This document shows positions 1,031 to 52,487 of a stretch of 64,000 nt of DNA, in pieces; position 1 is the stretch's first letter; every line of letters starts with the position of its first letter. Made by a program: the position numbers and the translations under genes. A model generated the notes under the pieces. It searched no databases. It saw nothing but the letters and a program-made list of their open reading frames with translations, and had not been told where the DNA came from. This DNA is from Macrostomum lignano (Eukaryota): NCBI GenBank assembly GCA_002269645.1, contig NIVC01001006.1, positions 151,147-215,146 on the forward strand, in the 5' to 3' direction.

Positions 1031-3735
1031 TCACCCGTAGCTCAGGCGCTCCGGGGGACGTCGAACTCGCGACGATCGGCGCAGAGACCCGTCGATCTCA
1101 GGGTCTCCAGGAGCAGCCAGGTTTGGCGGCTCGTCCACGGCCGGCATCGCAGCTTCCGGCTCAGGTGCGGCCTTGGCGTCGGTAGCACCGTCTGTCACGC
1201 CAGCTCCTGTAGGCCGCGGCTGCTCAGGACCACCGCGGACATGGTCAACGTGCCGCCGCACCACTCGGTCGTCGCCATCGAATCCGCACAGGTAGGAGGT
1301 CGGACCGGTGGCACCGACAACTCGCGCCGGCTTCCACCGACCTCCGTTGGCTCCAAAGTCTCTGGCCAGTACAGCGTCTCCAGTCTCGAAGGTCCTAAAC
1401 CGAGCTTTGCAGTCGTGGTGCTCTTTTTGCTGATTTTGCTTACGCTGTACTCTTGCTCCCAGGTCTGGCCGAGCTCGATCTAGCAACGTGCACAGGTGCC
1501 GTCCCATCAGGAGTTCGCAGGGAGCCACACCAGTTGTCGCATGCGGAGTGACCCGGTAGCTCAGCAGGAACCGGGCGACCTTATCCTCCAAGGAGTCTTC
1601 GCGCTGCTTCTCCAGGGACCGCTTCAGCGTCTGGACAGCTCGTTCCGCCAGGCCGTTGGACGCCGGATGGTAGGGAGCAACGCGCACGTGCTGAATGCCG
1701 TTCTTCTGGAGAAAGTCGGACATCTCCTCGCTGACCAAGTTGGGCCCATTGTCCGACACCAGCACATCTGGCAACCCGTGCGTCGCGAAGCTGGAGCGGA
1801 GTTTCTGGATGGTGACAGCTGAGGTCGCTGACGTCACCACATGCACATCCAGCCACTTTGAATGGGCATCGACGACAACCAGCAGCATCTTGCCAGACAC
1901 CGGACCCGCATAGTCGATATGCACTCGAGACCACGGTCGGTCAGGCCACGGCCACGACAACATTGGCGAAGGCGCCGGGGCGTTCTGCAACTCCTGACAG
2001 TCGGAGCAGGCCTTGGCCAGGTTTTCGATCTCCGAGTCTAATCCTGGCCACCAGAAATAACCTCGGGCTAACGTCTTCATGCGTGACGCCCCCGCATGAC
2101 CTTGATGCAGCACCTGGAGCAGTGCAGCTCGCGCTCCAACCGGGACCACCACTCGAGCGCCCCACAGGAGGCAGCCGTCTTGCACACTGAGCTCAGCCGC
2201 TCTCTTGGAGTATGGCAGCAGATCGTCACTGACCCGCTCTGGCCAGCCGATTTGCGTGAAGTGCAGAGCTCGGGCTAGTGTGGGGTCCCTTCGAGTCAGG
2301 CCGCGTATCTGAGCTGCCGTGACAGGTCCATCGTCCAGGTGGTCCATCAGCATGACCAGTTCTGCCAGCTTCGGGACCGTCGCCGGCTTGCCGGGCAGCG
2401 GCAGGCGACTCAGGGCATCGGCGCATAGCAGTGAGGCTCCGGCTCGGTGAACCATGCGGTAGTTATAGCCAGACAGCAGCAGAGCCCACCTCTGAATTCC
2501 TCCAGATGCCAGGGCCGGCACGGCCTTGTTCTCAGCAAGCAATCCAAGCAGAGGTTTGTGGTCACTCACCAGCAGAAATGGGCGGCCGAACAGGTACGCG
2601 TTGAACTTCTTGACCGCAAACACTACAGCGAGGGCTTCCTTCTCGAGCTGCGAGTAGTTTTTCTCAGCGTCGTGCAACGTACGCGAGGCAAAGGCCACAG
2701 GCCGGACAGCTCCATCGATCCTGTGGCTGATGACCGCACCCAGACCGTAAGGGGACGCGTCGCACTCGAGCAGCAGGTCTTCGCTCGGGTCAAAGTGCGC
2801 CAATACCGGAGCCGAAGACAGCAGGGCCTTGCACTTCTCGAAAGCGGAGTTCTGAGCAGCGCCCCAGTTCCAGCGGTGTTGCTCACGCAGCAGCAGGTGC
2901 AGCGGTGCCAGGATTTGAGACAAATTAGGCAGGAATTTGCCATAGTAGTTCACCATGCCTAGGAAGCTGCGCAGCTGAGTTGCGTCCTTGGGAGCTGGAG
3001 CGCTGACAATTGCCTCGACCTTGTCTTTGATCGGGTGCAGGCCGTCGGCATCGATGCGGTGACCGAGATAACTGATGCTCGTCTGCATGAACTGGCACTT
3101 CTCCAGTTTGCACCGGAGGCCACTCTGGCTCAGCTTCTCCAGAACCTGCTCCAGGGAGTTCAGATGACTGCTGTCGTCCTTCCCGGTGATGATGAGGTCA
3201 TCGATGAAGCAGGCGGTGCTGGTGATTCCTTGCAGCAAGCAGTCCATCCGGCGCTGAAAAATCCCGACCGCTGGCGAGACACCGAAGGGCAGCCGCGTGT
3301 ACCGAAGCAGCCCTTTGTGCGTATTGATCGTGCAGACTTCCTGGGAGGCCTCATCGAGTGGCAGCTGCATGTACGCCTGCGACAAGTCGAGCTTAGTAAA
3401 GAGCCGCCCACCAGTCAGCTTCGCGAACAGCTCTTCGATCCGTGGCAGAGGATACGAGTCGGGCTCCACGTTCGGGTTGACGGTCTGCTTAAAGTCGGCG
3501 CAGACCCTCACAGAGCCGTCGGACTTGAGCACTGGCACCACCGGCGATGCGTACTCGGAGTGCTGCACGGGCACCAGGATTCCTTGTTCGATCTCGCGGT
3601 TCAGTTGGCTCTCCACCTTGTCCTTCAAAGCAAAGGGGAGATTCCTGGCCTTCATAAAGCGAGGTTGAGCATCGGGCTTCATATTCAAGCTCACTGGCGG
3701 TCCGTTGTACTTCCCTAGCTCAGGTGAAAAAAACA
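1031..3735 (-). CDS. pol: Gypsy Pol: reverse transcriptase, RNase H, integrase
   Basis: Part of ORF 4087..1031. RT: YPLPRIEELF, LDLSQAY, PFGVSPAVGIFQ, FIDD. RNase H: CDASPYGLGAV, EKEALAV, DHKPL, DALSRL. Integrase: HHCC (LHQGH...CSDC) and D-D-E core (HIDYAGP, SDNGP, NGLAERAV). The part of the ORF upstream of about 3735 is out-of-frame sequence. Confidence 0.95.
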
Positions 3736-4952
3736 TCGCTGTACTTGTCGAGCAGCTGCTGCAGTCTGGGCGACACCTCAGGAGCAGCTGCCACCTGCTT
3801 GATTGATCTCCAGTCGAGCCGCAACTCGGACAGCCAGTCTCTTCCGAGCAGGTCGGATCCGCAGCCGGCGACCACAAGGAGGCTGAGTGACTTGGGCGGT
3901 GCTTCAGCAGCTTCCACAGCAACGCAGATGCAGCCTTCAATTGGCACTTTCTCACCGGAGTATGTTCGCAGCTGCACGGACGCAGGCTGCAGTGCTGGCT
4001 GGGAGTTGAGCACGGTCCTGTAGGTCTTCGAGGATACAAGGGACACGGAGGCTCCGGTGTCCACTTCCATGACAACAGGTCGGCCATTGATGCGCACCGT
4101 CGTTGTAATTGGCGGCACCTTCGACACCCGCTTGCCGGACAGCTGGTACAGAGAGTGGGCCGTTTCCTCCTTGCAGCTGTCTTTTTCCTCGCCGTCCTGC
4201 ATCTGCAGAGCCTCTCTTCTATCGTCCTTCGACTGGAATTTGCAGGCAGCCGCCGTGTGGCCGGTCTTTGAGCACTTGTAGCACTTCTGGGTGGCGAACG
4301 GGCACTTATTAGCGAGATGCTTCGTTGACAGGCACCTGAAGCACCTCCTCGTCGAAGATGACTTCTGCTGTTGCTTGAAAATGCTGACGGACTCCTGACT
4401 GACTGGATCTGGCTTACTCGCTCCCGACACCAGCTGGCAGCCCTTGGCGGCGGACTCGTGGGCCAGGGCCAGCTTCAATGCCTTCGCTAGAGTGAGATCG
4501 GGCTCCGCCAGCAGCCGCCGCTGAGCGCTGTCGTTGTTGATTCCCAGCACCAGCCTGTCGCGAAGCATCGAAGTCAGGCTGTCGCCGAACTTGCAGTCGC
4601 GAGCCAGGTCTCGGAGGTCTGCGACGAAGTCCGCGACGCCCTCACCTTCCCTGCGATTTCTGGTGTAGAACCGGTAACGATGGACGATCTCGGACTTCTC
4701 AGGCTCGAAATGGCTCTTCAGTGCTTCGCAAATTTCGGTGTAGCTCTTGGCTGATGGCTGTGCAGGAGACAGAAGACTGAAGGCCAGATGGAAGACTTTC
4801 TTGCCGCATGAACTCAGCAGAATCGCTCGCTTTTTCGCTTCCTCAGTGACGTCATTGGCAACAAAATATTGTTCTAACCTTGCTTGGTACATATGCCACG
4901 GCTCAGAGCCTTCTTCGTATGGGCCGACAAGCCCTAGTGCACTTGCACTCAT
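3720..4952 (-). CDS. gag: Gypsy Gag (two CCHC knuckles) plus aspartic protease
   Basis: W..Y..RLEQYFVANDV; CFRCLSTKHLANKC and CYKCSKTGHTAAAC; protease MEVDTGASVSLV...LLGRDWL. Confidence 0.95.
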   Translation of the reverse strand: MSASALGLVGPYEEGSEPWHMYQARLEQYFVANDVTEEAKKRAILLSSCGKKVFHLAFSLLSPAQPSAKSYTEICEALKSHFEPEKSEIVHRYRFYTRNRREGEGVADFVADLRDLARDCKFGDSLTSMLRDRLVLGINNDSAQRRLLAEPDLTLAKALKLALAHESAAKGCQLVSGASKPDPVSQESVSIFKQQQKSSSTRRCFRCLSTKHLANKCPFATQKCYKCSKTGHTAAACKFQSKDDRREALQMQDGEEKDSCKEETAHSLYQLSGKRVSKVPPITTTVRINGRPVVMEVDTGASVSLVSSKTYRTVLNSQPALQPASVQLRTYSGEKVPIEGCICVAVEAAEAPPKSLSLLVVAGCGSDLLGRDWLSELRLDWRSIKQVAAAPEVSPRLQQLLDKYSDVFFT

Positions 4953-4972
4953 TTGCGCAGGGTCGTTTCAGT

Positions 4973-39363: not shown

Positions 39364-41648
39364 TCAGTCGTCATCCTCGTCGTCGTCCTCGAACTGGGCA
39401 AGGCGGCGGCGGAGGTCTTTGATCTGGTCGTTTTTCTTCTGCAGCATCTGCTTCAGATTGCGGAACGGCGCCGTCTGCGACACCTTCAGCTCCAGTTCCT
39501 GCTCCGCCAGGCTGAGCAGGGCGCGAACTCGCGACAGCTCGTCCTCGGCCTCGTCGGGACCCAGCCCGGAGTGCTGGCGTGCAGGGGGGGGGGTCCGGCA
39601 GGTGAGCCCCTGGGGACTGGCGTGGCTTCCCCTGGCCTGAACTGACCTGTCCGACTGATGGACCTTGCTCTTGTGACCCGGCTTGACCTTCAACTCGGGA
39701 ACTGGCCTGGCCCTACCTTTGTGACCTGACCCGAACTTGTCACCTCACCTGACCCCGTCATTGCGACCTGACCAGACCCAATCCTTGTGACCTCACCTGA
39801 CCTCGTCATTGCGACCTGACCCGAACTTGTGACCTCACCTGACCTCGACATTGTGACCTCACCTGACCTCGTCATTGTGACCTGACCAGACCCAATCCTT
39901 GTGACCTCACCTGACCCCGTCATTGCGACCTGACCAGACCCAATCCTTGTGACCTCACCTGACCCCGTCATTGCGACCTGACCAGACCCAATCCTTGTGA
40001 CCTCACCTGACCCCGTCATTGCGACCTGACCAGACCCAATCCTTGTGACCTCACCTGACCCCGTCATTGCGACCTGACCAGACCCAATCCTTGTGACCTC
40101 ACCTGACCCCGTCATTGCGACCTGACCAGACCCAATCCTTGTGACCTCACCTGACCCCGTCATTGCGACCTGACCAGACCCAATCCTTGTGACCTCACCT
40201 GACCTCGTCATTGCGACCTGACCCGAACTTGTGACCTCACCTGACCTCGACATTGTGACCTCACCTGACCTCGTCATTGTGACCTGACCAGACCCAATCC
40301 TTGTGACCTCACCTGACCCCGTCATTGCGACCTGACCAGATCCAATCTTTGTGACCTCACCTGACCCCGTCATTGCGACCTGACCAGATCCAATCCTTGT
40401 GACCTAACTTGACCATTCGATCTGAACTGACCCACCGTGACCTTTGACCTTGTTTTTATTACCAGACCTGACCTCTCGATCTGAACAAATTTTTTTACCT
40501 GAGACCCGATTTGGCCTGACAATGGAGACAAGACTCACCTGAGCTCGCATCTCGCGCCGGTCGTCCCGCATCCGTTCGAGCTCCTTCTCGAGGTCGCGCA
40601 CCAGCCGGTCGCCGCCCTTGACGCCCTGGGCGAGCTGCCTGGCCAAGTCCAGCTTGTCCGTCTTCAGCCGCTCGGCCTCGATCTGGGCGTCCTGCAGGCG
40701 CTCCTCCAGCTGGCCGATCTGGACGTGCAGGCGGCCGATCTCCTGGCGGAGCAGCTCCGTGCTGCCCGTGTCGTTCACCGGGGCCAGGTGCGGCCTGGCG
40801 TCGGCGCCGGCGCCGCTGAACTCGGCTTCCTCGAATTCGCGGATGCGGTCCAGCAGGGCCTTGTTCTCCAGCTCGGACACGTCCGCGGACAGGCGGAGGT
40901 GCCACTTCTCCGCCTGCGGGGATCGGAGCTCTGATGCTAGTGCATTCTAATGCAAGTCCTAATGCTAGTGCATTCTAATGCAAGTCCTAATGCTAGTGCA
41001 TTCTAATGCAAGTCCTAATGCTAGTGCATTCTAATGCCAGTCCTAATGCTAGTGCATTCTAATGCAAGTCCTAATGCTAGTGCATTCTAATGCAAGTCCT
41101 AACGCTAGTGCATTCTAATGCAAGTCCTAATGCTAGTGCATTCTAATGCAAGTCCTAATGCTAGTGCATTCTAATGCAAGTCCTAATGCTAGTGCATTCT
41201 AATGCAAGTCCTAATGCTAGTGCATTCTAATGCAAGTCCTAACGCTAGTGCATTCTAATGCAAGTCCTAATGCTAGTGCATTCTAATGCAAGTCCTAATG
41301 CTAGTGCACTCTAATGCAGTTCCAAACGCACTGTACCTGCCCATTCCGCACCCCAGCAGCAGCGAGCCCAGTTACCTGTTGGAACAGCTGCCTGAGCAGC
41401 AGAATATTGGTGTGAGCACCGTTAATGAGCTCAGCCTCCACCTCGGTGCGCACATTCTCTTCCAGGTCGGCCAGCAGGTCTTCCACCTCGTCGATAGTGA
41501 AGTTGGCCTCGTCCTTCAGCCTGGAGTCGCGGATGTCGTCAAAGCAGCCAAGGACACTTTTTAGTCTCTGGCCGCGCTGGTAGCGAGCGAAGCGCAGGTA
41601 CTGCACAATGTTGGTCTGGTGGTGATCGTTCAGGCCCAGGGCTGACAT
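39364..41648 (-). CDS. LZTFL1: Leucine zipper transcription factor-like 1 (BBS17); 3 coding exons
   Basis: Exons 41648-41376, 40913-40539, 39573-39364. MSALGLNDHHQ...YLRFAR...FTIDEV...ELIN.AHTNILLLRQLFQQAEKWHLRL..DVSELEN...KKNDQIKDLRRRLAQFE closely follows recalled LZTFL1. Confidence 0.95.
39715..40410. repeat. 48-bp minisatellite, LZTFL1 coding intron 2
   Basis: GTGACCTCACCTGACCCCGTCATTGCGACCTGACCAGACCCAATCCTT. Confidence 0.95.
40935..41320. repeat. 28-bp minisatellite, LZTFL1 coding intron 1
   Basis: GCTAGTGCATTCTAATGCAAGTCCTAAT. Confidence 0.96.
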
Positions 41649-41674
41649 GGCGTGGCTGCGGGGTTAGGGAGGCA

Positions 41675-42090
41675 CTCGCACCTGATTGGCTGCTCAATTA
41701 TCCACCACTGATAACTGCTGGCCAGGCAATCACACCTGATTGGCTGTTCAATTATCCACTGATAACTGCTGGCCAGGCACTCACACCTGATTGGCTGCTC
41801 AATTATCCACTGATAACTGCTGGCCAGGCAATCACACCTGATTGGCTGTTCAATTATCCACTGATAACTGCTGGCCAGGCACTCACACCTGATTGGCTGC
41901 TCAATTATCCACTGATAACTGCTGGCCAGGCAATCACACCTGATTGGCTGCTCAATTATCCACCACTGATAACTGCTGGCCAGGCACTCACACCTGATTG
42001 GCTGCTCAATTATCCACTGATAACTGCTGGCCAGGCACTCACACCTGATTGGCTGCTCAATTATCCACTGATAACTGCTGGCCAGGCACT
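41675..42090. repeat. 51-54-bp minisatellite in the putative LZTFL1 5' UTR intron (42145-41656)
   Basis: CACACCTGATTGGCTGCTCAATTATCCACTGATAACTGCTGGCCAGGCACT x about 8, bounded by a GTGAGT donor and a CTAAC...GCAG acceptor on the minus strand. Confidence 0.9.
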
Positions 42091-42145
42091 CAGGGTTCGT
42101 GGGGTGAGTCACCACTGAGCTGCCGCACCCTTGCCAGACACTCAC

Positions 42146-42200
42146 GCCTACATAAGCCTATAAGCGCTGGACACAAATGAGAAGTCAACAAGAGCAAACT
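42146..42200 (-). promoter_or_regulatory. Unpaired 3' splice acceptor (U-rich tract plus CAG at 42167) and a 21-nt non-coding exon: candidate SL trans-splice site for LZTFL1
   Basis: Minus strand reads TTTGCTCTTGTTGACTTCTCATTTGTGTCCAG|CGCTTATAGGCTTATGTAGGC|GTGAGT, about 60 nt downstream of the AATAAA at 42232-42227. Confidence 0.55.
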
Positions 42201-42226
42201 GTACAGGTACTTCTGCAACATCGCAA

Positions 42227-42232
42227 TTTATT
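42227..42232 (-). terminator. Candidate poly(A) signal of ENTR1
   Basis: Minus-strand AATAAA about 450 nt after the ENTR1 stop. Confidence 0.6.
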
Positions 42233-42677
42233 GAGTGCCAGATATCGGACCCGATCTACTCAAAAATCCCTAAGCAGGATGATATAAAAATGGCTGAAGG
42301 CGTGCAGGAACAAATTATCATAAATTACATTAGCTGAGCGCTAGGGGTGCAGTTGAAGGCATGCTGGGCGCAGACAGGTGGATGAGATAATCCTGGCTAA
42401 TTATTAATTAACACAATAAGCATTAATCACGCGAGAATCACACAAGTCGGAGTGAGCACTGATTAGAGTTTGCGGGACTGCCAGTTGCCAATAAAAATAA
42501 TGAATGATTTGTCCTTGCCAGACAGAGCGCAGCGTCGGCTTGAAGAATTCATATTCTCAATTTCAATAAATCTGCATCCAGCGGGCATCTCGGGCGATAT
42601 AAAACAAGCAATGCATTAATTATGCTAATGAGATGTCCATAATAGGAAAACGCGCTAAAGGGGGGGGGGCGGCAGCC

Positions 42678-43673
42678 TCAGTCCGGGTCGTCCATCCGGG
42701 CCGCCCCGCCGCCGCCCGCCTCCTCCCGCAGCCGGCCGAGAGAGTCCAGCCGGTCCGCCAGCAGGTGCGCCGCTTCCAGGCCCTTCAGCAGCGCCTGGAG
42801 AGCCGTCTCCTGCTGCCGGGCGCCCAGCCGAAGCTGCCCGGCAATGCCGCGGGCCTCCGCGGTCACCGCGTCCTGCTCCCCCGACGGCTGCTGCGGAGCT
42901 GAAGTCACCGACGCTCCTGCCGAGGCCGCCGATGCAGCTGAGCGCGCCTCCTGCAGCTGCTGCCGCAGGCGGGCCACTCGCTGCTCGGCCCGGGCCGCCC
43001 GGTCGTTGGCAGCGGTGAGGGCGGCCTCGACCTGGCGCAGCTGGTCTGTCTCCAGGCGCTCCTGGTCCTCGCGCTGGCGCAGCCGGCGGCGCAGCTGGTC
43101 GCACTCGCGGCCGAGCCGGGCGCAGCCGGGGCAGCCGTGGACGGCTGGCGAGCCGGGCGGGGCGGCCGAGGCGGCAGGCGGCGAGCCCGCCGACAGAATT
43201 GGCGAGGCGGAGGCGTCGCTCGGCGTTGAGGCGGTTGCCGCGGCGGCGGTCGCGGGTTCGTGCCCCGCTAGGAAGTCGGGCAGCGGCGTCGGCTCGGCCG
43301 GTGGGGAGGCGGCGGTGGCGGCAGCTGAGGACGCCGCGGCAGCTGCTGCTGCTGACGCGGCCGAAGCTGCTGCAGCGGCAGCGACAGCGGCGGCGTCTCG
43401 CGGCGGCACGGGAGGCGGCGGGGGCGGAGGCGGCGGCGCGTGGTGGTGATGGTGCAAATGCGAGGCCGGGCTGCTGCCTTCGGCCGACTGCACAAAATCT
43501 GGCAGATGGTGATTGGCCAGGCTGAACGGATTCTGATTGGCTGGGGGCGGCGGCGGCGGGGGAGGCTGGTGGTCAGAGATGAGGAAGCGCCGGAACGAGT
43601 AGGGGTTGTCCTCAGGAGGCGGTGGCGGCGGGCCCGGTGTCGCCTCGTGGCCGGTTGCGGCGCGGCTCGACAT
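42678..43673 (-). CDS. ENTR1: Endosome-associated trafficking regulator 1 (ENTR1/SDCCAG3)-like; intronless, 331 aa
   Basis: N-terminal EDNPYSFRRFL (ENTR1 NPFSFREFL motif), NPFSL..LPDF, coiled coil QVEAALTAANDRAARAEQRVARLRQQL, and a C-terminal helix ending LLADRLDSLGRL. Confidence 0.75.
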   Translation of the reverse strand: MSSRAATGHEATPGPPPPPPEDNPYSFRRFLISDHQPPPPPPPPANQNPFSLANHHLPDFVQSAEGSSPASHLHHHHHAPPPPPPPPPVPPRDAAAVAAAAAASAASAAAAAAASSAAATAASPPAEPTPLPDFLAGHEPATAAAATASTPSDASASPILSAGSPPAASAAPPGSPAVHGCPGCARLGRECDQLRRRLRQREDQERLETDQLRQVEAALTAANDRAARAEQRVARLRQQLQEARSAASAASAGASVTSAPQQPSGEQDAVTAEARGIAGQLRLGARQQETALQALLKGLEAAHLLADRLDSLGRLREEAGGGGAARMDDPD

Positions 43674-44097
43674 GGCGGCGGCTGCGGTGGCAGCTTCTGC
43701 AGCTGGAAAGCAGGAGAGAGGCAGCAGGGTGCTGGCTAATTAGGCTCAAAATGGTGGCTTTGGCCACTGCTAGCCAGCAAGGAGGCAAGCAGTTTAAGGA
43801 GTGAACATGAGCATGAACATGGGTATGTACACAGGCAAACAGGGTTTTCAGTTCAAGTTTGGGAATGTACATAGGTTATAGTTTATTATATAAGGTCGCA
43901 ATTACACCTTTAAGCATATAGACATAAACAGCTTTTTTTGAACTTATAATTTTATACTTTTAGCTAAACAATCAAACAAAAGTACAAAAGTGAAAATTAT
44001 AGATTACATTCAATAGTTTGTATGAACTTCAAGATTTAAATTATATTATATATTTTAATGAATCTAAATTAAAATAACAAAAATATGATATTTTTAA

Positions 44098-47617: not shown

Positions 47618-50600
47618 ATGGCAACCCAGGCTGGAGCAACGGCGTATGTGCATTATTTTATTTTAGGAATGTTTTTAATTTTTTACATCAAATGCTCTCT
47701 AAGTCTAAAAAATCTGCTTTATTTGACCGTGTCGAATCTTTCTAAAATTTCTAACATGCATGGCAACACCCTCAAAAAACTAAAGTTAGCGGTCACAACT
47801 AAGAATTGCACAACATACATAATTTAAATATCTATTTATCTAATTATTTCGAAATCGAAGAAAAATCGATAATCGATCATTCACATTCAGCGCCTAATTT
47901 TCCCCTTTTCCTAGTATTAAACTTTAATTCTTAGCCATCTTTTGATGGAAGCTTTAAGCTTGCATGTAGAAGTTACCAATATAAAAAAATTATATTCGAA
48001 TTTTCGCTATCGATAGTTTATCAAAAATCAACTCCTTAAAAACATACTAGATCTACCCCCCCCCCCAAGCACACTAAAGCACCAAACACTTATCATTAAC
48101 AGAGTCCCAAGCAAGGAGTACGTGGACAAGACGCTGACAGAGCAGGACAAGCTCCTCGCCGACCTGTTCCAGTCGTTTGTCGGCTACACCAGGCGCACCA
48201 GCAAGCAGAGGGACAACGGCGACGACATTGCCACCATCGTTGGCGCCTGCGCTCAGTCGGAGAAATACGACAAGACCACCAAGGCGTCGCTGGGCGAAGT
48301 CGCCACCGTCCTGGCCAACGTGGAAGAATACCGGGACAACCACGTGCGCAACCTGGAAAACCACGTGCTGCACGAGTTGGCCAAGTTCGGCAACCAGCAC
48401 AGGGGATCTCAGGTTAGCTCGAAATTGACTTTTTAATACGACTTAACGTTTCGTTTGGAGCTCGATGTTGTGTCGTTTTGTTTAGTTTTACTTGTATTTA
48501 CTTAAACCAATCCAACCAACCGTTCAATCACCCAACCTAGTTGGTAGAATAACTATATGGAGATGGAATTGAGACAATTACTCGTAATTATAAAGCGACA
48601 AGCTGTTGAAACCCGCGGATTTTGAACCCGGGGAATTCCAATACCCGGAACTACTTTTGCATGTATTCTGAAATCTAAGGCCATACACAGCCATACACAA
48701 ACAAAAACTTGTTAATCTTGTTAAAAACTTGTTAAATCTTGTTAGAAATTGTTAAATCTTGTTTGTTAAACTTGTTAAAACTTGTAAGGAAAGAGGTAGA
48801 CATAAAATGGAGCACATTCGTGTAAAATTAGGGTTTGAGACATTGTTGGCTGAGGTACTGCGCAGAATGTCAGGCAATGTCTGTCTGACTCTAAAACATA
48901 TATTGCTAAACTCTGGTCTCTCCCTGACTCTCCCTACGTCCCTTGGATCCTTTAAAATTTCTATCATCTCTTTGTTTCCTCTCATCTCTCTCGTCCCTCG
49001 TCTCTCCTCTCTCCTCTCTCCTCTCTCCCCTCTTCTCTCATATCTTTCCTCATCTCTCTTCTCTTTCATCTCTCTTATCTCATCTCTTGTCTCTTCTTTT
49101 CTCTCTCCTCTCCTCTCTCCTGTCCTCTCTCCTCTCTCCCCCTCTCCTCTCTCCTCTCACCCCCTCTTCTCTCTTATCTTCCTTCTCCTTTCTATTCTTT
49201 TCTCTCTTCTCTTAACTCTCTCCTCTACTCTCTCATCTCTCCCCTCTTCTCTCGTCTCTTCCCTCACCTCTTTTCTCTCTCGTCTTTGCTCTCTCATCTT
49301 TCCTTTTCATCTCCCTCTCTTCTCTCACTCCACTCTCCTCTCTCCGTTATCTCTCATCTCTCATTTCTCATCTCTCCTTCCACCTCTCTCATCTCTACAA
49401 CCTTAGAGATGTAGAGATGTATCTTTATCTCTTCTCTTTTTCCTTTACTCTCTCATCTCTTCTTTCACCTGTTTCCTCTCTGCTCTTCTCTCTGCTGTCT
49501 CCTCTCTCCTCTCATCTGCAGCTCTCTGCTCTCTCATCTCTACTCTCTCCTCTCGCTTTTCCTCTCTCCCCTCTTCTCCCCCTCTCTCTCATCGTCCTCA
49601 CCCCCTCATCTCTACTATTATCTTTTATCTTTTCTTTTATCCCCTCTGTCGCCTCTCCTCTCTTCGAATCGTCTATTCCTTCTTCTTTCCACTTTCATCT
49701 GCCCCTCAGCTATGAGCTGGATTCTTTATCTGGCCTTTGAGGTAAAATTATGCCCATCCCATCCCTGCTTGGAAAGCCAGTTTGTGGGACGTAGTACTCT
49801 CATGGTTGTTCTCATGCTTTGATCACGTCATCTTTCTTGCCAATTTGCAGCCCTGAAAGGAATTTGTGTATCTTCAGCTCCACTGCAGTCTGCATCAGTC
49901 TAACAACCAAGGAAATAAGCATTTCTTAGGAGGCCATTTAAAATTTACACAGTACCTTTAAAAGAAACCTAAAATTTCCATGGTGTGCCTAATTTAGTAG
50001 GGTTTTACGAGCGTATTGCATTGCATCGCATCGCCTTTTCATAAATCTTTCGCTTTTACAAACCATGCTGGATTCCCTCGATTTGCCAATTGCCATCCAC
50101 TGTTAAACTGCTGCAGAGTTTGCCAATACAGAGGGGAGGGCAGTGGTTAGAATTTCTCACTAAACTGTTATGGCTAAACGTAGCCTCTCTACCATAGATA
50201 AAGTATACATAGATTCCACCCCTGCCCCCGCGGAGTGTCTAAATTGTGACCATCACTTTATTCACTGCGCTCCTATTGGCTGGGCCACGCTATGCACATT
50301 GAGTCCACGTGTGTACATTCCCCCAACTCCGGAACACTTGCGTGTCGACTTCATTCTTGCTAAACTGTTGAAACTGGTAAGACATCCTTTCGTTCCGCGC
50401 ATTAAAGTTATAAAGCTTTCTTGTGTGGAAGGGGTGAGGGAATGAAATCGAAGGGGTTGAAAGGAAGGCTTTCGCGCCAGCCAATGAGAGCACGGTGAGT
50501 TTTATGGTGGTCAAAGTTTGGACACGAGCGTGTGTACATTCTGGGCAGGGGTGGAATCTATGTATACTTTATCTATGCTCTCTACTCTCGGGGTGCAGAG

Positions 50601-52487
50601 AAGGCTATAAATAAAGTTATTCAAAAACACTGTACATTTGCTATGTACATTCAGTCCTATCGCCTGACCCTTCGTCTGGCTCTGGGGGAATGAGTGAGTG
50701 AGTGGCACAAACAACAGAAAAAGCAGACAAACTTCACATGCTTACAGTTTCTTTTTCGGTTAAGTTACAAAGTTGAAACTTTACATTTAGATAGAGAATG
50801 GGTCAATGAAGAATTGTGTAAAGTTTGAAGTCAATCGCTTTACGTGGAGCAAACTTATGGCAGCTGAAAGTTAGTCAATTTTGAAACCCTTTTACACATC
50901 TGGGCCCAGATCGGGATCGGGAAAGAGGCAGGCGGGCGGAGGTTGGGGTGGCTGTCTCGCTGAAAAAAAGCAGCCTCACTTTAAAAGTGCACAGCGCTGT
51001 TCAGGATTAACTTTGAGACTCGAAATTTTACATGATTGTGCCAAAATAGTTTAAGATTATCTGTGTCAAATTTGAAGAGAATCGGTAGAAGTGGAGCGGC
51101 GCTATGGAGGATTAAGTGAAAAAATCGCGCATTTTGAGCAGTTTTTTGCACTTGTAGGTGGGAAGACTCAAATTTAGGAAATTTTAAGGTAGCCTAAGAC
51201 ATTCTCCGTAGTAAGTTTAGGGTGGGTGTAAAGTTTGGTGTCATTTGGTTGAGCGGTTTGGGAGTCCATAGCGATCAAAATTGTCCACAGACAGACAGAC
51301 AGACACACAGACAGAGTTTTGATTTTTATATGTAGAGAAGAAGAGTTTTGATTTTTATAGGTAGAGATGAAACCGAAAGGGGTATATTTGAGCGAGATAC
51401 TCTAGGTCGACATTTATAAGCCGAATGAAAACGTACAATACACATACACGATTGAGCGTAGTATGGGGTGGGGCGATCAGTAAAGAGTGAAGGTGGTGCG
51501 ATCAATAATTGGGGAATGTACGAACGAGCAAGATGAATATGCGAACCCCTAATTGAGCGTACATTTAGCTATTGCAAACGTAAAAGTACAAGAAATACCG
51601 CGACACAGTGGCAGCTCCAGAACACAACCAACCGTTCAATCACCCTGTTGTGTTTGTAGTTAATTGATGAATTCAATTCAGTCTAGTCAGACAGTGGTCC
51701 AGACACTTCTGTCTCGGTCAATATATTTATAGTCAAAGCATGCACGATGTACATTACTCAATCGTTAGCTAACATTTGCACGTTAAACTAAACACTGATT
51801 GTGCAATCACTTATCAATAGATATCAGAGCAAACTATTCAATGAGTCATCATGCAAACTAAATCTCGTTGCACCTTCACAACACACCCAACAAACCGTTC
51901 AATCACTTAACCAACCGTTCAATCACCCAACCAACCGTTCAATCACTTAACCAACTGTTCAATCACCCAGCAAAACGTCCAAGCACCCAACCAACCGTTC
52001 AATCACTTAACCAACCGTTCAATCACTTAACCAACCGTTCAATCACTTAACCAACCGTTCAATCACCCAACCAACCGTTCAATCACCCAACCAACCGTTC
52101 AATCATCCGTCTAACCAATTTAACCAATCGCAACACCTCCCGCAGACGAACCTGCGCCGTTCTTTGTCGCAGAGTCAGCGCCGCAAAAGCGGTGCCAACG
52201 GTCAGTCGCAGGCTGAGCAGACCTTCAGTCGGGAGCTCATCGACTTCGAGAGTCGGCGGGTCACCGGCCTGCGCTCGGTGCTGCAGAACTACATGTTCAG
52301 CGAGCTGGCCTGGCACCTGAAGGCTGCCGAGCTGTACTCCAACGCGTTCAAAGCTCTGCAGGCCATAGACGAGAACGAGGACGTCGAAGATTTCAGACGA
52401 TCGCTGCAGTTGCCAAGGGAAACGCAGTCGTTAAAGTCTACGGACCGGCACCAGCTGCCAGGTGGCGGCACCGGCACCCTGTCGTGA
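47618..52487 (+). CDS. FAM92: FAM92/CIBAR ciliary BAR-domain protein; 3 exons
   Basis: Exons 47618-47643 (tentative), 48103-48412, 52146-52487. FVGYTRRTSKQRDNGD, EEYRDNHVRNLENHVLHEL and ELAWHLKAAELYSNAFKALQAIDENEDVEDFRRSL match recalled FAM92A/B. Confidence 0.82.
48940..49890. repeat. Unclassified interspersed repeat, copy B (in FAM92 intron 2)
   Basis: Diverged homolog of 45830-46480 in the same orientation. Confidence 0.75.
50193..50577. mobile_element. MITE (385 bp), P-superfamily-like
   Basis: Perfect 35-bp TIR CATAGATAAAGTATACATAGATTCCACCCCTGCCC. Perfect 8-bp TSD CTCTCTAC at 50185-50192 and 50578-50585. The superfamily is inferred only from CAT termini plus the 8-bp TSD. Confidence 0.85.
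50700..51370 (+). mobile_element. Helentron/DINE-1-like non-autonomous element (tentative)
   Basis: Repeated TGTGTAAAGTTTG / TGTGTCAAATTTG blocks, GGTTGAGCGGTTTGGGAGTCCATAG, a (GACA)n microsatellite near the 3' end and a TTTATATGTAGA-type terminus. No TIR or TSD found; ends are approximate. Confidence 0.45.
51870..52125. repeat. 19-20-bp minisatellite at the 3' end of FAM92 intron 2
   Basis: CCAACCGTTCAATCACTTAA; isolated units also near 48518 and 51628. Confidence 0.9.

Follow-up and report, generated by a model that had tools for sequence, protein, structure and literature searches.

ENTR1 and LZTFL1 probably form a two-gene spliced-leader operon, with a minisatellite in the spacer, in the flatworm Macrostomum lignano

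We analysed a stretch of 64,000 nucleotides of the Macrostomum lignano genome, referred to below as the window (contig C1006, positions 151147-215146), in which the gene for ENTR1 lies directly upstream of the gene for LZTFL1. Coordinates are window positions, and both genes are on the minus strand. A preliminary description of this DNA, made from the letters alone, had proposed that the two genes are transcribed together and separated by spliced-leader (SL) trans-splicing. Our analysis points the same way: ENTR1 and LZTFL1 are probably an ordinary two-gene SL operon of M. lignano. The co-transcription of the genes, the poly(A) site, the addition of the SL and the choice of acceptor are what we infer from sequence; the identity, order and strand of the genes, the signals between them and the presence of SL RNA genes in this genome are direct observations. 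The proposal gains from the taxon, from the gene names, from the SL RNA genes and from agreement with the sequence-testable criteria of a published operon catalogue. It loses on the argument that the spacer has no room for a promoter, on an acceptor that is altered in one genomic copy, on the 5' end annotated in GenBank and on the arrangement of the two genes elsewhere. Genome-wide searches were made in the Mlig_3_7 assembly (764,410,778 bp in 5,269 contigs).

The upstream gene has the following parts (a slash marks a splice junction):

43703-43720, minus strand: candidate SL (or cis) acceptor of ENTR1, ctctctcctgcTTTCCAG/, from direct reading; the exon would start at 43702, 29 nt before the ATG.
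42681-43673, minus strand: coding sequence (CDS) of the ENTR1 (SDCCAG3) orthologue, a single GC-rich exon encoding 331 amino acids, from the open reading frame (ORF) and homology; the stop codon TGA is at 42680-42678.
42205-42677, minus strand: 3' untranslated region (UTR) of ENTR1, ~465 nt with 44% GC, up to a predicted cleavage at ~42215-42200; its end is placed from the lone AATAAA.

A phmmer search with the ENTR1 ORF among 1.8e9 proteins gave three matches, two of which are named endosome-associated-trafficking regulator 1 (Cryptolaemus, 5.2e-4; Tachypleus, 5.3e-4). In pairwise BLASTP the C-terminal coiled coil matches the Tachypleus protein at 6e-14, and the alignment with the named ENTR1 proteins has in common an N-terminal E-x-NP-[FY]-SF-x-x-F motif, the motif LPDFVQ and the LL.G...L columns. 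The NPFSF-type N-terminal motif, the C-terminal coiled coil and the significant similarity to named proteins place the ORF in the ENTR1/SDCCAG3 family, and the name proposed for the upstream gene is right. No Pfam model matched the ORF. Word-index protein searches with the whole sequence and with residues 176-331 gave no match, the candidates probably having been swamped by poly-P and poly-A words. Exact look-ups of the ENTR1 ORFs of the window and of a second genomic copy, on contig C1880, did not find M. lignano ENTR1 in the public protein sets searched, which is consistent with the exclusion of repeat-overlapping transcripts from GenBank. The candidate acceptor in front of ENTR1 (cTTTCCAG/) is a full match to the published trans-acceptor motif [T/C]TNCAG (PMC8629364), and the putative operon may have an SL on its first gene, ENTR1, as well. 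In a third copy, on contig C1353, a 1-nt deletion in a G5 run (equivalent to ~42875) shifts the ENTR1 frame, which then stays open from the ATG for only 269 amino acids (331 in the window). Either genuine decay of a duplicated copy or an assembly error in the homopolymer could account for this.

The downstream gene has three coding exons:

41376-41648, minus strand: LZTFL1 coding exon 1, with the ATG at 41648 and the donor CAG/gtaact, from the PF15294 match and the protein match.
40539-40913, minus strand: LZTFL1 coding exon 2, from the PF15294 match.
39364-39573, minus strand: LZTFL1 coding exon 3, stop codon included, from the PF15294 match.

The Pfam family PF15294 (Leu_zip) matches these exons with E-values of 7e-27, 1e-23 and 1e-17 (95.1, 84.7 and 65.1 bits against a cut-off of 28.2), and positions 1-175 and 223-274 of the 275 in the model are covered. 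The exons are 100% identical to M. lignano proteins, and the best named matches are LZTFL1 of many animals. With PF15294 above its gathering score and these named matches, the downstream gene is LZTFL1, as had been suggested. Each of its three intron-like intervals is nearly filled by a minisatellite of its own with short flanks (39737-40414, 40934-41318 and 41670-42092), the repeat units being 24/96 bp, 28 bp and 51 bp long.

M. lignano has a single SL of 35 nt, ending in ATG, which is added to ~30% of its genes and to 45% of its conserved genes (PMC8629364). The catalogued operon genes number 10,458, or ~15%, and two-gene operons make up 75% of the operons (PMC8629364). Operons are defined in that catalogue as co-oriented neighbours, the downstream one SL-spliced, that are < 1 kb apart once repeats have been subtracted; the modal repeat-adjusted spacing is ~100 bp, and repeats inflate the intercistronic distance (PMC8629364). 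In the assembly we found 43 occurrences of the exact SL exon CGGTCTCTTACTGCGAAGACTCAATTTATTGCATG, mostly in arrays ~11 kb apart. They are followed by GTAAG, three hairpins (-32.9 kcal/mol, z = -3.1) and the Sm-like sequence AUUUUUAG, matching the published description (PMC8629364). The genome thus contains arrays of SL RNA genes, and the flatworm SL trans-splicing presumed in the preliminary description is a property of this very species. A further 14 copies of the SL differ by a single mismatch (e.g. A18G, T27C), some of them paired 7-11 kb apart.

ENTR1 (43673-42678) and LZTFL1 (41648-39364) point the same way and are immediate neighbours; neither strand has an ORF of coding character in the interval. 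Measured from the cleavage predicted for ENTR1 (~42215-42200, placed from AATAAA), the distance is 35-50 nt to 42166, the first position after the proximal of two candidate acceptors. To 41655, the first position after the distal one, it is 545-560 nt, or ~120-140 nt if the 423-nt minisatellite array is subtracted. Leaving the repeat aside, only ~130 nt lie between the ENTR1 poly(A) signal and the LZTFL1 ATG. In strand, adjacency, single poly(A) signal, repeat-adjusted spacing (35-140 nt) and SL RNA genes, the pair agrees with the published M. lignano operon catalogue as far as sequence can show.

The spacer contains, in the direction of transcription:

42227-42232, minus strand: AATAAA poly(A) signal of ENTR1, the sole hexamer of 13 canonical and variant forms scanned for in 42700-41600, kept in 3/3 genomic copies.
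42213-42218, minus strand: alternative acceptor TTGCAG/, 14 nt after AATAAA, the one place in the spacer where [T/C]TNCAG is matched in full.
42170-42198, minus strand: U/GU-rich tract gtttgctcttgttgacttctcatttgtgt, with a pyrimidine fraction of 0.72 at -20..-3 of 42167.
42167-42168, minus strand: AG of the proposed trans-splice acceptor, gtgtcCAG/, a TNCAG match with G at -6, kept in 3/3 copies.
42146-42166, minus strand: proposed 21-nt 5'-UTR micro-exon cgcttataggcttatgtaggc, identical in 3/3 copies.
42140-42145, minus strand: consensus 5' splice site GTGAGT, within a degenerate repeat unit that reads GTGAGTGTCTGGCAAG against GTGAGTGCCTGGCCAG in the regular unit.
41670-42092, minus strand: 51-bp minisatellite, 8.2 copies with 94% matches over 423 nt, from Tandem Repeats Finder (TRF).
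41656-41657, minus strand: AG of a C-rich acceptor, cctccctaaccccgcAG/, 7 nt before the ATG, with a pyrimidine fraction of 0.72.
41642-41643, minus strand: next AG downstream, atgtcAG/CCCTGG, which coincides with the 5' boundary implied by a partial CDS in GenBank.

The signals had been read before as an ENTR1 stop at 42678, AATAAA at 42232-42227, a U-rich tract, a CAG at 42167, a 21-nt exon, a cis-intron at 42145-41656 and the ATG 7 nt into the next exon, and we find each of the signals, the donor GTGAGT and the acceptor at 41656 included, at these positions on the minus strand. The two acceptors had also been well chosen. Among the 64 AG dinucleotides scanned between 42235 and 41640, only those at 42167 and 41656 are preceded by at least 70% pyrimidines at -20..-3. 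The TTGCAG at 42213 has a weak pyrimidine tract (0.44) and overlaps the expected cleavage zone. The acceptor at 41656 has 'ccccgcag' in common with the genuine acceptor of LZTFL1 intron 1; it may close the proposed intron in cis, receive the SL directly, or do both. The U/GU-rich tract is open to two readings as well, as downstream element of the poly(A) site and as polypyrimidine tract for the acceptor at 42167, and it may serve both. Sites of the form GT[AG]AG occur five times in the spacer, four of them inside repeat units.

We estimated how often such signals coincide by chance from 111 AATAAA hexamers, taken from both strands of the window and from four unrelated loci. A pyrimidine-rich AG follows at +20..+100 in 18% of them, and only two (1.8%) also have a GTRAG 10-85 nt later. 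The full combination of poly(A) signal, acceptor and donor is seen at one of the 93 hexamers of the window, namely the ENTR1-LZTFL1 site. The pattern is real and uncommon.

Under the operon interpretation, RNA polymerase II would start upstream of ENTR1, within the AT-rich spacer at 43.7-48 kb, and would read through both genes. Cleavage and polyadenylation of the ENTR1 mRNA would follow ~15-30 nt beyond the AATAAA (42232-42227), and the tract at 42198-42170 would serve as their downstream element. The LZTFL1 mRNA would receive its cap and 5' end from the 35-nt SL, trans-spliced to either of the strong acceptors at 42167 and 41656. This leaves two layouts. In layout (a), which is that of the preliminary description, the SL would be joined at 42167 to the 21-nt exon, followed by a 490-nt, minisatellite-filled intron in the 5' UTR (42145-41656). 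We consider this exact layout less likely than not. It is suggested by the rare combination of poly(A) signal, acceptor and donor, by the succession of a T-rich acceptor and a cis-type C-rich acceptor with the 'ccccgcag' of the genuine intron 1, and by the likeness of all three LZTFL1 'introns', each of which would be a minisatellite between short flanks. The 5' UTR formed in this way would contain only two tiny, terminated upstream ORFs (uORFs); read directly, the AUG of an SL joined to the 21-nt exon would open a uORF of three codons (AUG CGC UUA UAG). The other four GTGAGT sites would lie within the intron and do no harm.

In layout (b), which we consider rather doubtful, the SL would be joined directly at 41656 and the minisatellite would lie in an intercistronic stretch of 545-560 nt. 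The repeat-adjusted spacing is then near the published mode, and the expansion of operon spacers by repeats is documented in this species (PMC8629364). At a distant LZTFL1 locus (L014, 61% identity), the ATG is likewise preceded, at a distance of exactly 7 nt, by an acceptor-like ttttaAG. In flatworms, cis- and trans-splicing often use the same acceptors (PMC12582326), so that both 42167 and 41656 may be used; it is also frequent for genes to have several SL sites (PMC5730564, PMC12582326).

The ENTR1-LZTFL1 locus is present in only three copies in the genome: the window, C1353, which is identical in the spacer region, and C1880, which is ~98.5% identical. The copies cannot serve as older paralogues for reading conservation, as at 98.5-100% identity they have diverged too little to reveal constraint. 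C1880 keeps the AATAAA, the CAG at 42167, the 21-nt segment and the GTGAGT, with a 1-nt deletion of a T in the U tract, and its 51-bp array has two extra units (10 vs 8). GenBank contains a complete CDS of 285 amino acids for the C1880 gene (BOX15_Mlig011437g4). The annotation of the M. lignano genome was obtained by splitting RNA-seq 'transcriptional units' into genes at peaks of SL and poly(A) reads (PMC5730564).

Several observations weigh against an operon or against one of its layouts. The U-rich tract is no independent evidence for an acceptor, because it is placed where a poly(A) downstream element is expected, and the GTGAGT at 42145 is no independent evidence for a donor, because it is the start of a degenerate 51-bp repeat unit. 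Both acceptors are one position off the enriched motif [T/C]TNCAG (42167 reads GTCCAG, 41656 reads CCGCAG), although this motif is contained in only 44% of real sites (9,551 of 21,754; PMC8629364). Layout (b) has two drawbacks of its own: five consensus GTGAGT donors would lie in the outron, and the AUG of the SL would open an out-of-frame uORF of 39 codons that overlaps the start. In C1880 the acceptor at 41657-41656 reads CGCTG instead of CGCAG (A to T), yet the CDS of this copy is the one annotated as complete. The gene of the window and of C1353 (BOX15_Mlig011437g2) has a 5'-partial CDS (P0090) that starts with ALGLNDHH at codon 3. It follows that the annotated mRNA of the window copy has its 5' end at 41644-41642, and not at 42166 or 41655. 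Neither acceptor predicts this boundary, because SL peaks at 42166 or 41655 should have given a complete CDS in the copies that have the AG. The TG of C1880 and the codon-3 CDS of the window copy argue against layout (a) as the annotated one. A very short genome-encoded 5' UTR would ease such a truncation, which fits a direct SL at 41656 or a transcription start site just upstream of the ATG. It is also conceivable, if speculative, that reads keeping the last SL bases (..TG) match the TG of C1880 better than the AG of the other copies, which could shift the boundary evidence to C1880; another Macrostomum pipeline deliberately left the ATG of the SL untrimmed (PMC10468722).

The boundary at codon 3 could also be taken at face value, with the SL joined within the genomic start region, at the AG of 41643-41642. 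P0090 starts at codon 3, the annotated mRNA at or beside this AG, and the pipeline relies on peaks of SL and poly(A) reads, where present, to set gene boundaries (PMC5730564). Such an mRNA would have no ATG of its own, and the AUG of the SL would be out of frame (ATG CCC TGG GCC TGA). With no in-frame AUG for ~200 codons it cannot be a productive form; moreover, the identical sequence in C1880 is annotated as complete. We regard this explanation as very improbable, and the codon-3 boundary is more likely to be a truncated assembly or gene model, or else a minor non-productive site.

The locus tags themselves were considered as a possible trace of a shared transcriptional unit. Tags g2 and g4 of Mlig011437 are used for a gene with only three copies, which implies that the cluster with this prefix holds at least four 'genes', as two genes per unit would give; the naming of genes per transcriptional unit is set out in Suppl. 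Fig. 5a of PMC5730564. We rejected this as proof, as the gN number also counts duplicate loci and alternative transcripts, so that it is an ambiguous hint. No mention of Mlig011437, LZTFL1 or ENTR1 was found in the paper full text and supplements searched.

The preliminary description had argued that the spacer leaves almost no room for a separate promoter. This presupposes that 42145-41656 is an intron; otherwise there are ~560 nt, with eight CCAAT boxes. Each unit of the 51-bp minisatellite carries AGCCAATCAG, a CCAAT/NF-Y-type box whose flanks presumably fit the NF-Y preference, and the palindrome TTATCAGTGGATAA. The array in the window has eight boxes, the last of which ends ~37-40 nt before the LZTFL1 ATG, and GTGAGT is also found in four further units. 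A 36-nt core of the unit (<= 3 mismatches) occurs only at the three copies of the ENTR1-LZTFL1 locus in the 764-Mb genome, and the idea that the unit is a dispersed repeat was rejected on this ground.

LZTFL1 might have a promoter of its own in the spacer and no operon would exist, the eight CCAAT boxes and the palindromic GATA-like sites at 51-nt spacing being its elements. Transcription would start close to the ATG and give a very short 5' UTR, the CAG at 42167 would just happen to come after the downstream element of the ENTR1 poly(A) site, and the repeat unit would have produced the GTGAGT incidentally. We consider this reading doubtful. It draws on the presence of the CCAAT box with its flanks in every unit, on the restriction of the array to this locus, on the position of the U-rich tract, which is that of a downstream element, and on the GTGAGT at 42145 belonging to a degenerate repeat unit. 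It also copes well with the annotation: the change from AG to TG in C1880 would be harmless, that copy being annotated as complete, and, if the genomic 5' UTR is very short, an mRNA assembly truncated at its 5' end would naturally yield a partial CDS from codon 3. On the other hand, the CCAAT motif was noticed post hoc, and by our own estimate a 51-nt unit has CCAAT on either strand by chance in ~9% of cases. The other two LZTFL1 introns hold minisatellites for which no promoter role is needed. Non-repeat spacing of ~130 nt in a large, repeat-rich genome of 764 Mb corresponds to the published operon mode, and the combination of poly(A) signal, acceptor and donor is rare by chance. Finally, a promoter next to the ATG leaves unexplained why a strong acceptor lies 7 nt before it, with the same spacing in L014. 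In a variant of this explanation, transcription would start at 42227-42146, in the 3' flank of ENTR1; the intron 42145-41656 would then be real, and the first exon would be capped and not SL-spliced.

The two routes might also be combined. In Caenorhabditis elegans there are 'hybrid operons', and LZTFL1 could similarly have two sources, SL trans-splicing of the polycistronic ENTR1 precursor and an internal promoter in the spacer. The signals of both routes do coexist here, the acceptors and the single poly(A) signal on one side and the CCAAT array on the other, and the frequent sharing of acceptors by cis- and trans-splicing and the several SL sites of many flatworm genes would suit such an arrangement (PMC12582326, PMC5730564). 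We rate it as improbable: the idea is purely combinatorial, and part of its probability has already been counted under the operon and under the promoter in the spacer.

A check of synteny had been recommended. The adjacency of ENTR1 and LZTFL1 is absent in four other loci searched with tblastn, a result that also speaks against the operon. There is no ENTR1 within 10 kb on either side of LZTFL1 in Dimorphilus or Capitella, none in the 1.7 kb available upstream of the L014 LZTFL1, and no LZTFL1 on the 8.6-kb ENTR1 contig L018. LZTFL1 is flanked by an enoyl-CoA hydratase gene and DcpS in Dimorphilus, and by CEP70 and a prefoldin gene in Capitella. The linkage of ENTR1 and LZTFL1 is thus not old. 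On L014, a contig from the European Nucleotide Archive (ENA), the acceptor-like sequence 7 nt before the LZTFL1 ATG is tatatatttttaAG (1690-1706), with a decayed mariner-type transposase ORF upstream.

Both genes are cilia-related: vertebrate ENTR1 acts at the basal body and in endosomal trafficking, and LZTFL1 (BBS17) in the traffic of the BBSome. The pair may be functionally linked, an argument from annotation only. A third cilia-related gene lies close by, a homologue of the ciliary-base BAR-domain protein FAM92/CIBAR (PF06730, 6e-12) with matches at 48101-48433 and ~52200-52400 on the plus strand; its first coding exon was not found. It is divergent from ENTR1 across a 4.3-kb spacer with 34% GC, so that CIBAR, ENTR1 and LZTFL1 are three cilia-related neighbours. 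Local clustering of cilia genes is possible. One could imagine a cilia module of the Macrostomum lineage in which CIBAR is divergent from an ENTR1-LZTFL1 operon, the three genes share one regulatory region and the CCAAT/GATA minisatellite is an evolvable internal promoter tuning the dosage of LZTFL1 (8 vs 10 units). We think this unlikely; if true, function would have driven the formation of an operon and a cluster in a flatworm. A scan for X-boxes of RFX in 39-48.2 kb gave five one-mismatch matches against 3.1 in shuffled sequences, none of them beside LZTFL1. The octamer ATGGCAAC, which corresponds to the right half of an RFX X-box, is present at 47618-47625 and again 142 bp further on at 47760-47767 (plus strand), 330-480 nt upstream of the CIBAR exon. 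Across the window RTGGCAAC occurs five times against 4.2 expected, which is the level of chance, and the octamers are only a weak hint of RFX control at CIBAR.

Elsewhere the window contains a gag-pol element of the long terminal repeat (LTR) retrotransposon type at 1034-4967 on the minus strand (zinc knuckle, aspartyl protease, reverse transcriptase, RNase H and integrase in two long overlapping ORFs), an F-box protein gene (14.2-19.3 kb, plus strand), a short-chain dehydrogenase gene (22.5-24.9 kb, plus strand), an ionotropic glutamate receptor gene (25.7-29.8 kb, minus strand) and a Ser/Thr kinase gene (57.4-58.7 kb, minus strand). No family reached its gathering score in an Rfam scan of the window.

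Operons are already known in M. lignano and have been catalogued genome-wide in Mlig_3_7; if confirmed, ENTR1-LZTFL1 would be one more two-gene operon beside ~10,000 catalogued operon genes and would change little. The pair offers a clean test of whether functionally related genes are ever brought together in flatworm operons. It also illustrates how minisatellites can stretch intercistronic regions or 5'-UTR introns and confuse the annotation of gene boundaries in a polyploid, duplicated genome. In practical terms, the design of a cilia-specific LZTFL1 reporter for transgenic M. lignano depends on whether the promoter is upstream of ENTR1 or in the spacer.

How does the locus compare with known systems? 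TATA-less promoters with CCAAT boxes bound by NF-Y are resembled by the putative promoter through the AGCCAATCAG box, which is present eight times and ends ~40 nt before the ATG; the difference is that the motif lies within a minisatellite resembling those in the other introns of the gene. The SL2 operons of C. elegans have an intercistronic region of roughly 100 nt with a U-rich Ur element, and 3'-end formation is coupled to SL2 trans-splicing. The order of the signals is alike, with a poly(A) signal, a cleavage site, a U-rich tract and an acceptor ~60 nt from the AATAAA, but M. lignano is reported to use one SL for all targets, and the spacing of 35-50 nt with an acceptor at 42167 would be shorter. 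There is no sign of a specialised leader of the SL2 type among the 43 exact and 14 one-mismatch SL copies, and on this point the locus does not qualify as an SL2 operon. In the parasitic flatworms Schistosoma and Echinococcus, candidate operons were defined by same-strand spacing of <= 300 bp and an SL on the downstream gene (PMC12582326). They resemble the present case in that acceptors are shared by cis- and trans-splicing, which would let 41656 play both roles; they differ in their SL sequences and lineages, and a search of PMC12582326 did not show the ENTR1-LZTFL1 pair among those discussed. The closest comparison is with the SL operons of M. lignano itself (Wudarski et al. 2017, PMC5730564; Ustyantsev & Berezikov 2021, PMC8629364). 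These papers do not discuss a candidate 21-nt exon and 5'-UTR intron after the acceptor, and they define operons by SL reads on the downstream gene, our pair being known from sequence. The likeness is as follows: the species and the assembly are the same, the genes are co-oriented with one AATAAA between them, the spacing is near the ~100-bp mode and below the 1-kb threshold, the unadjusted distance is enlarged by a tandem repeat, and the pair has the usual two-gene size and consists of conserved genes, which are preferentially SL-spliced.

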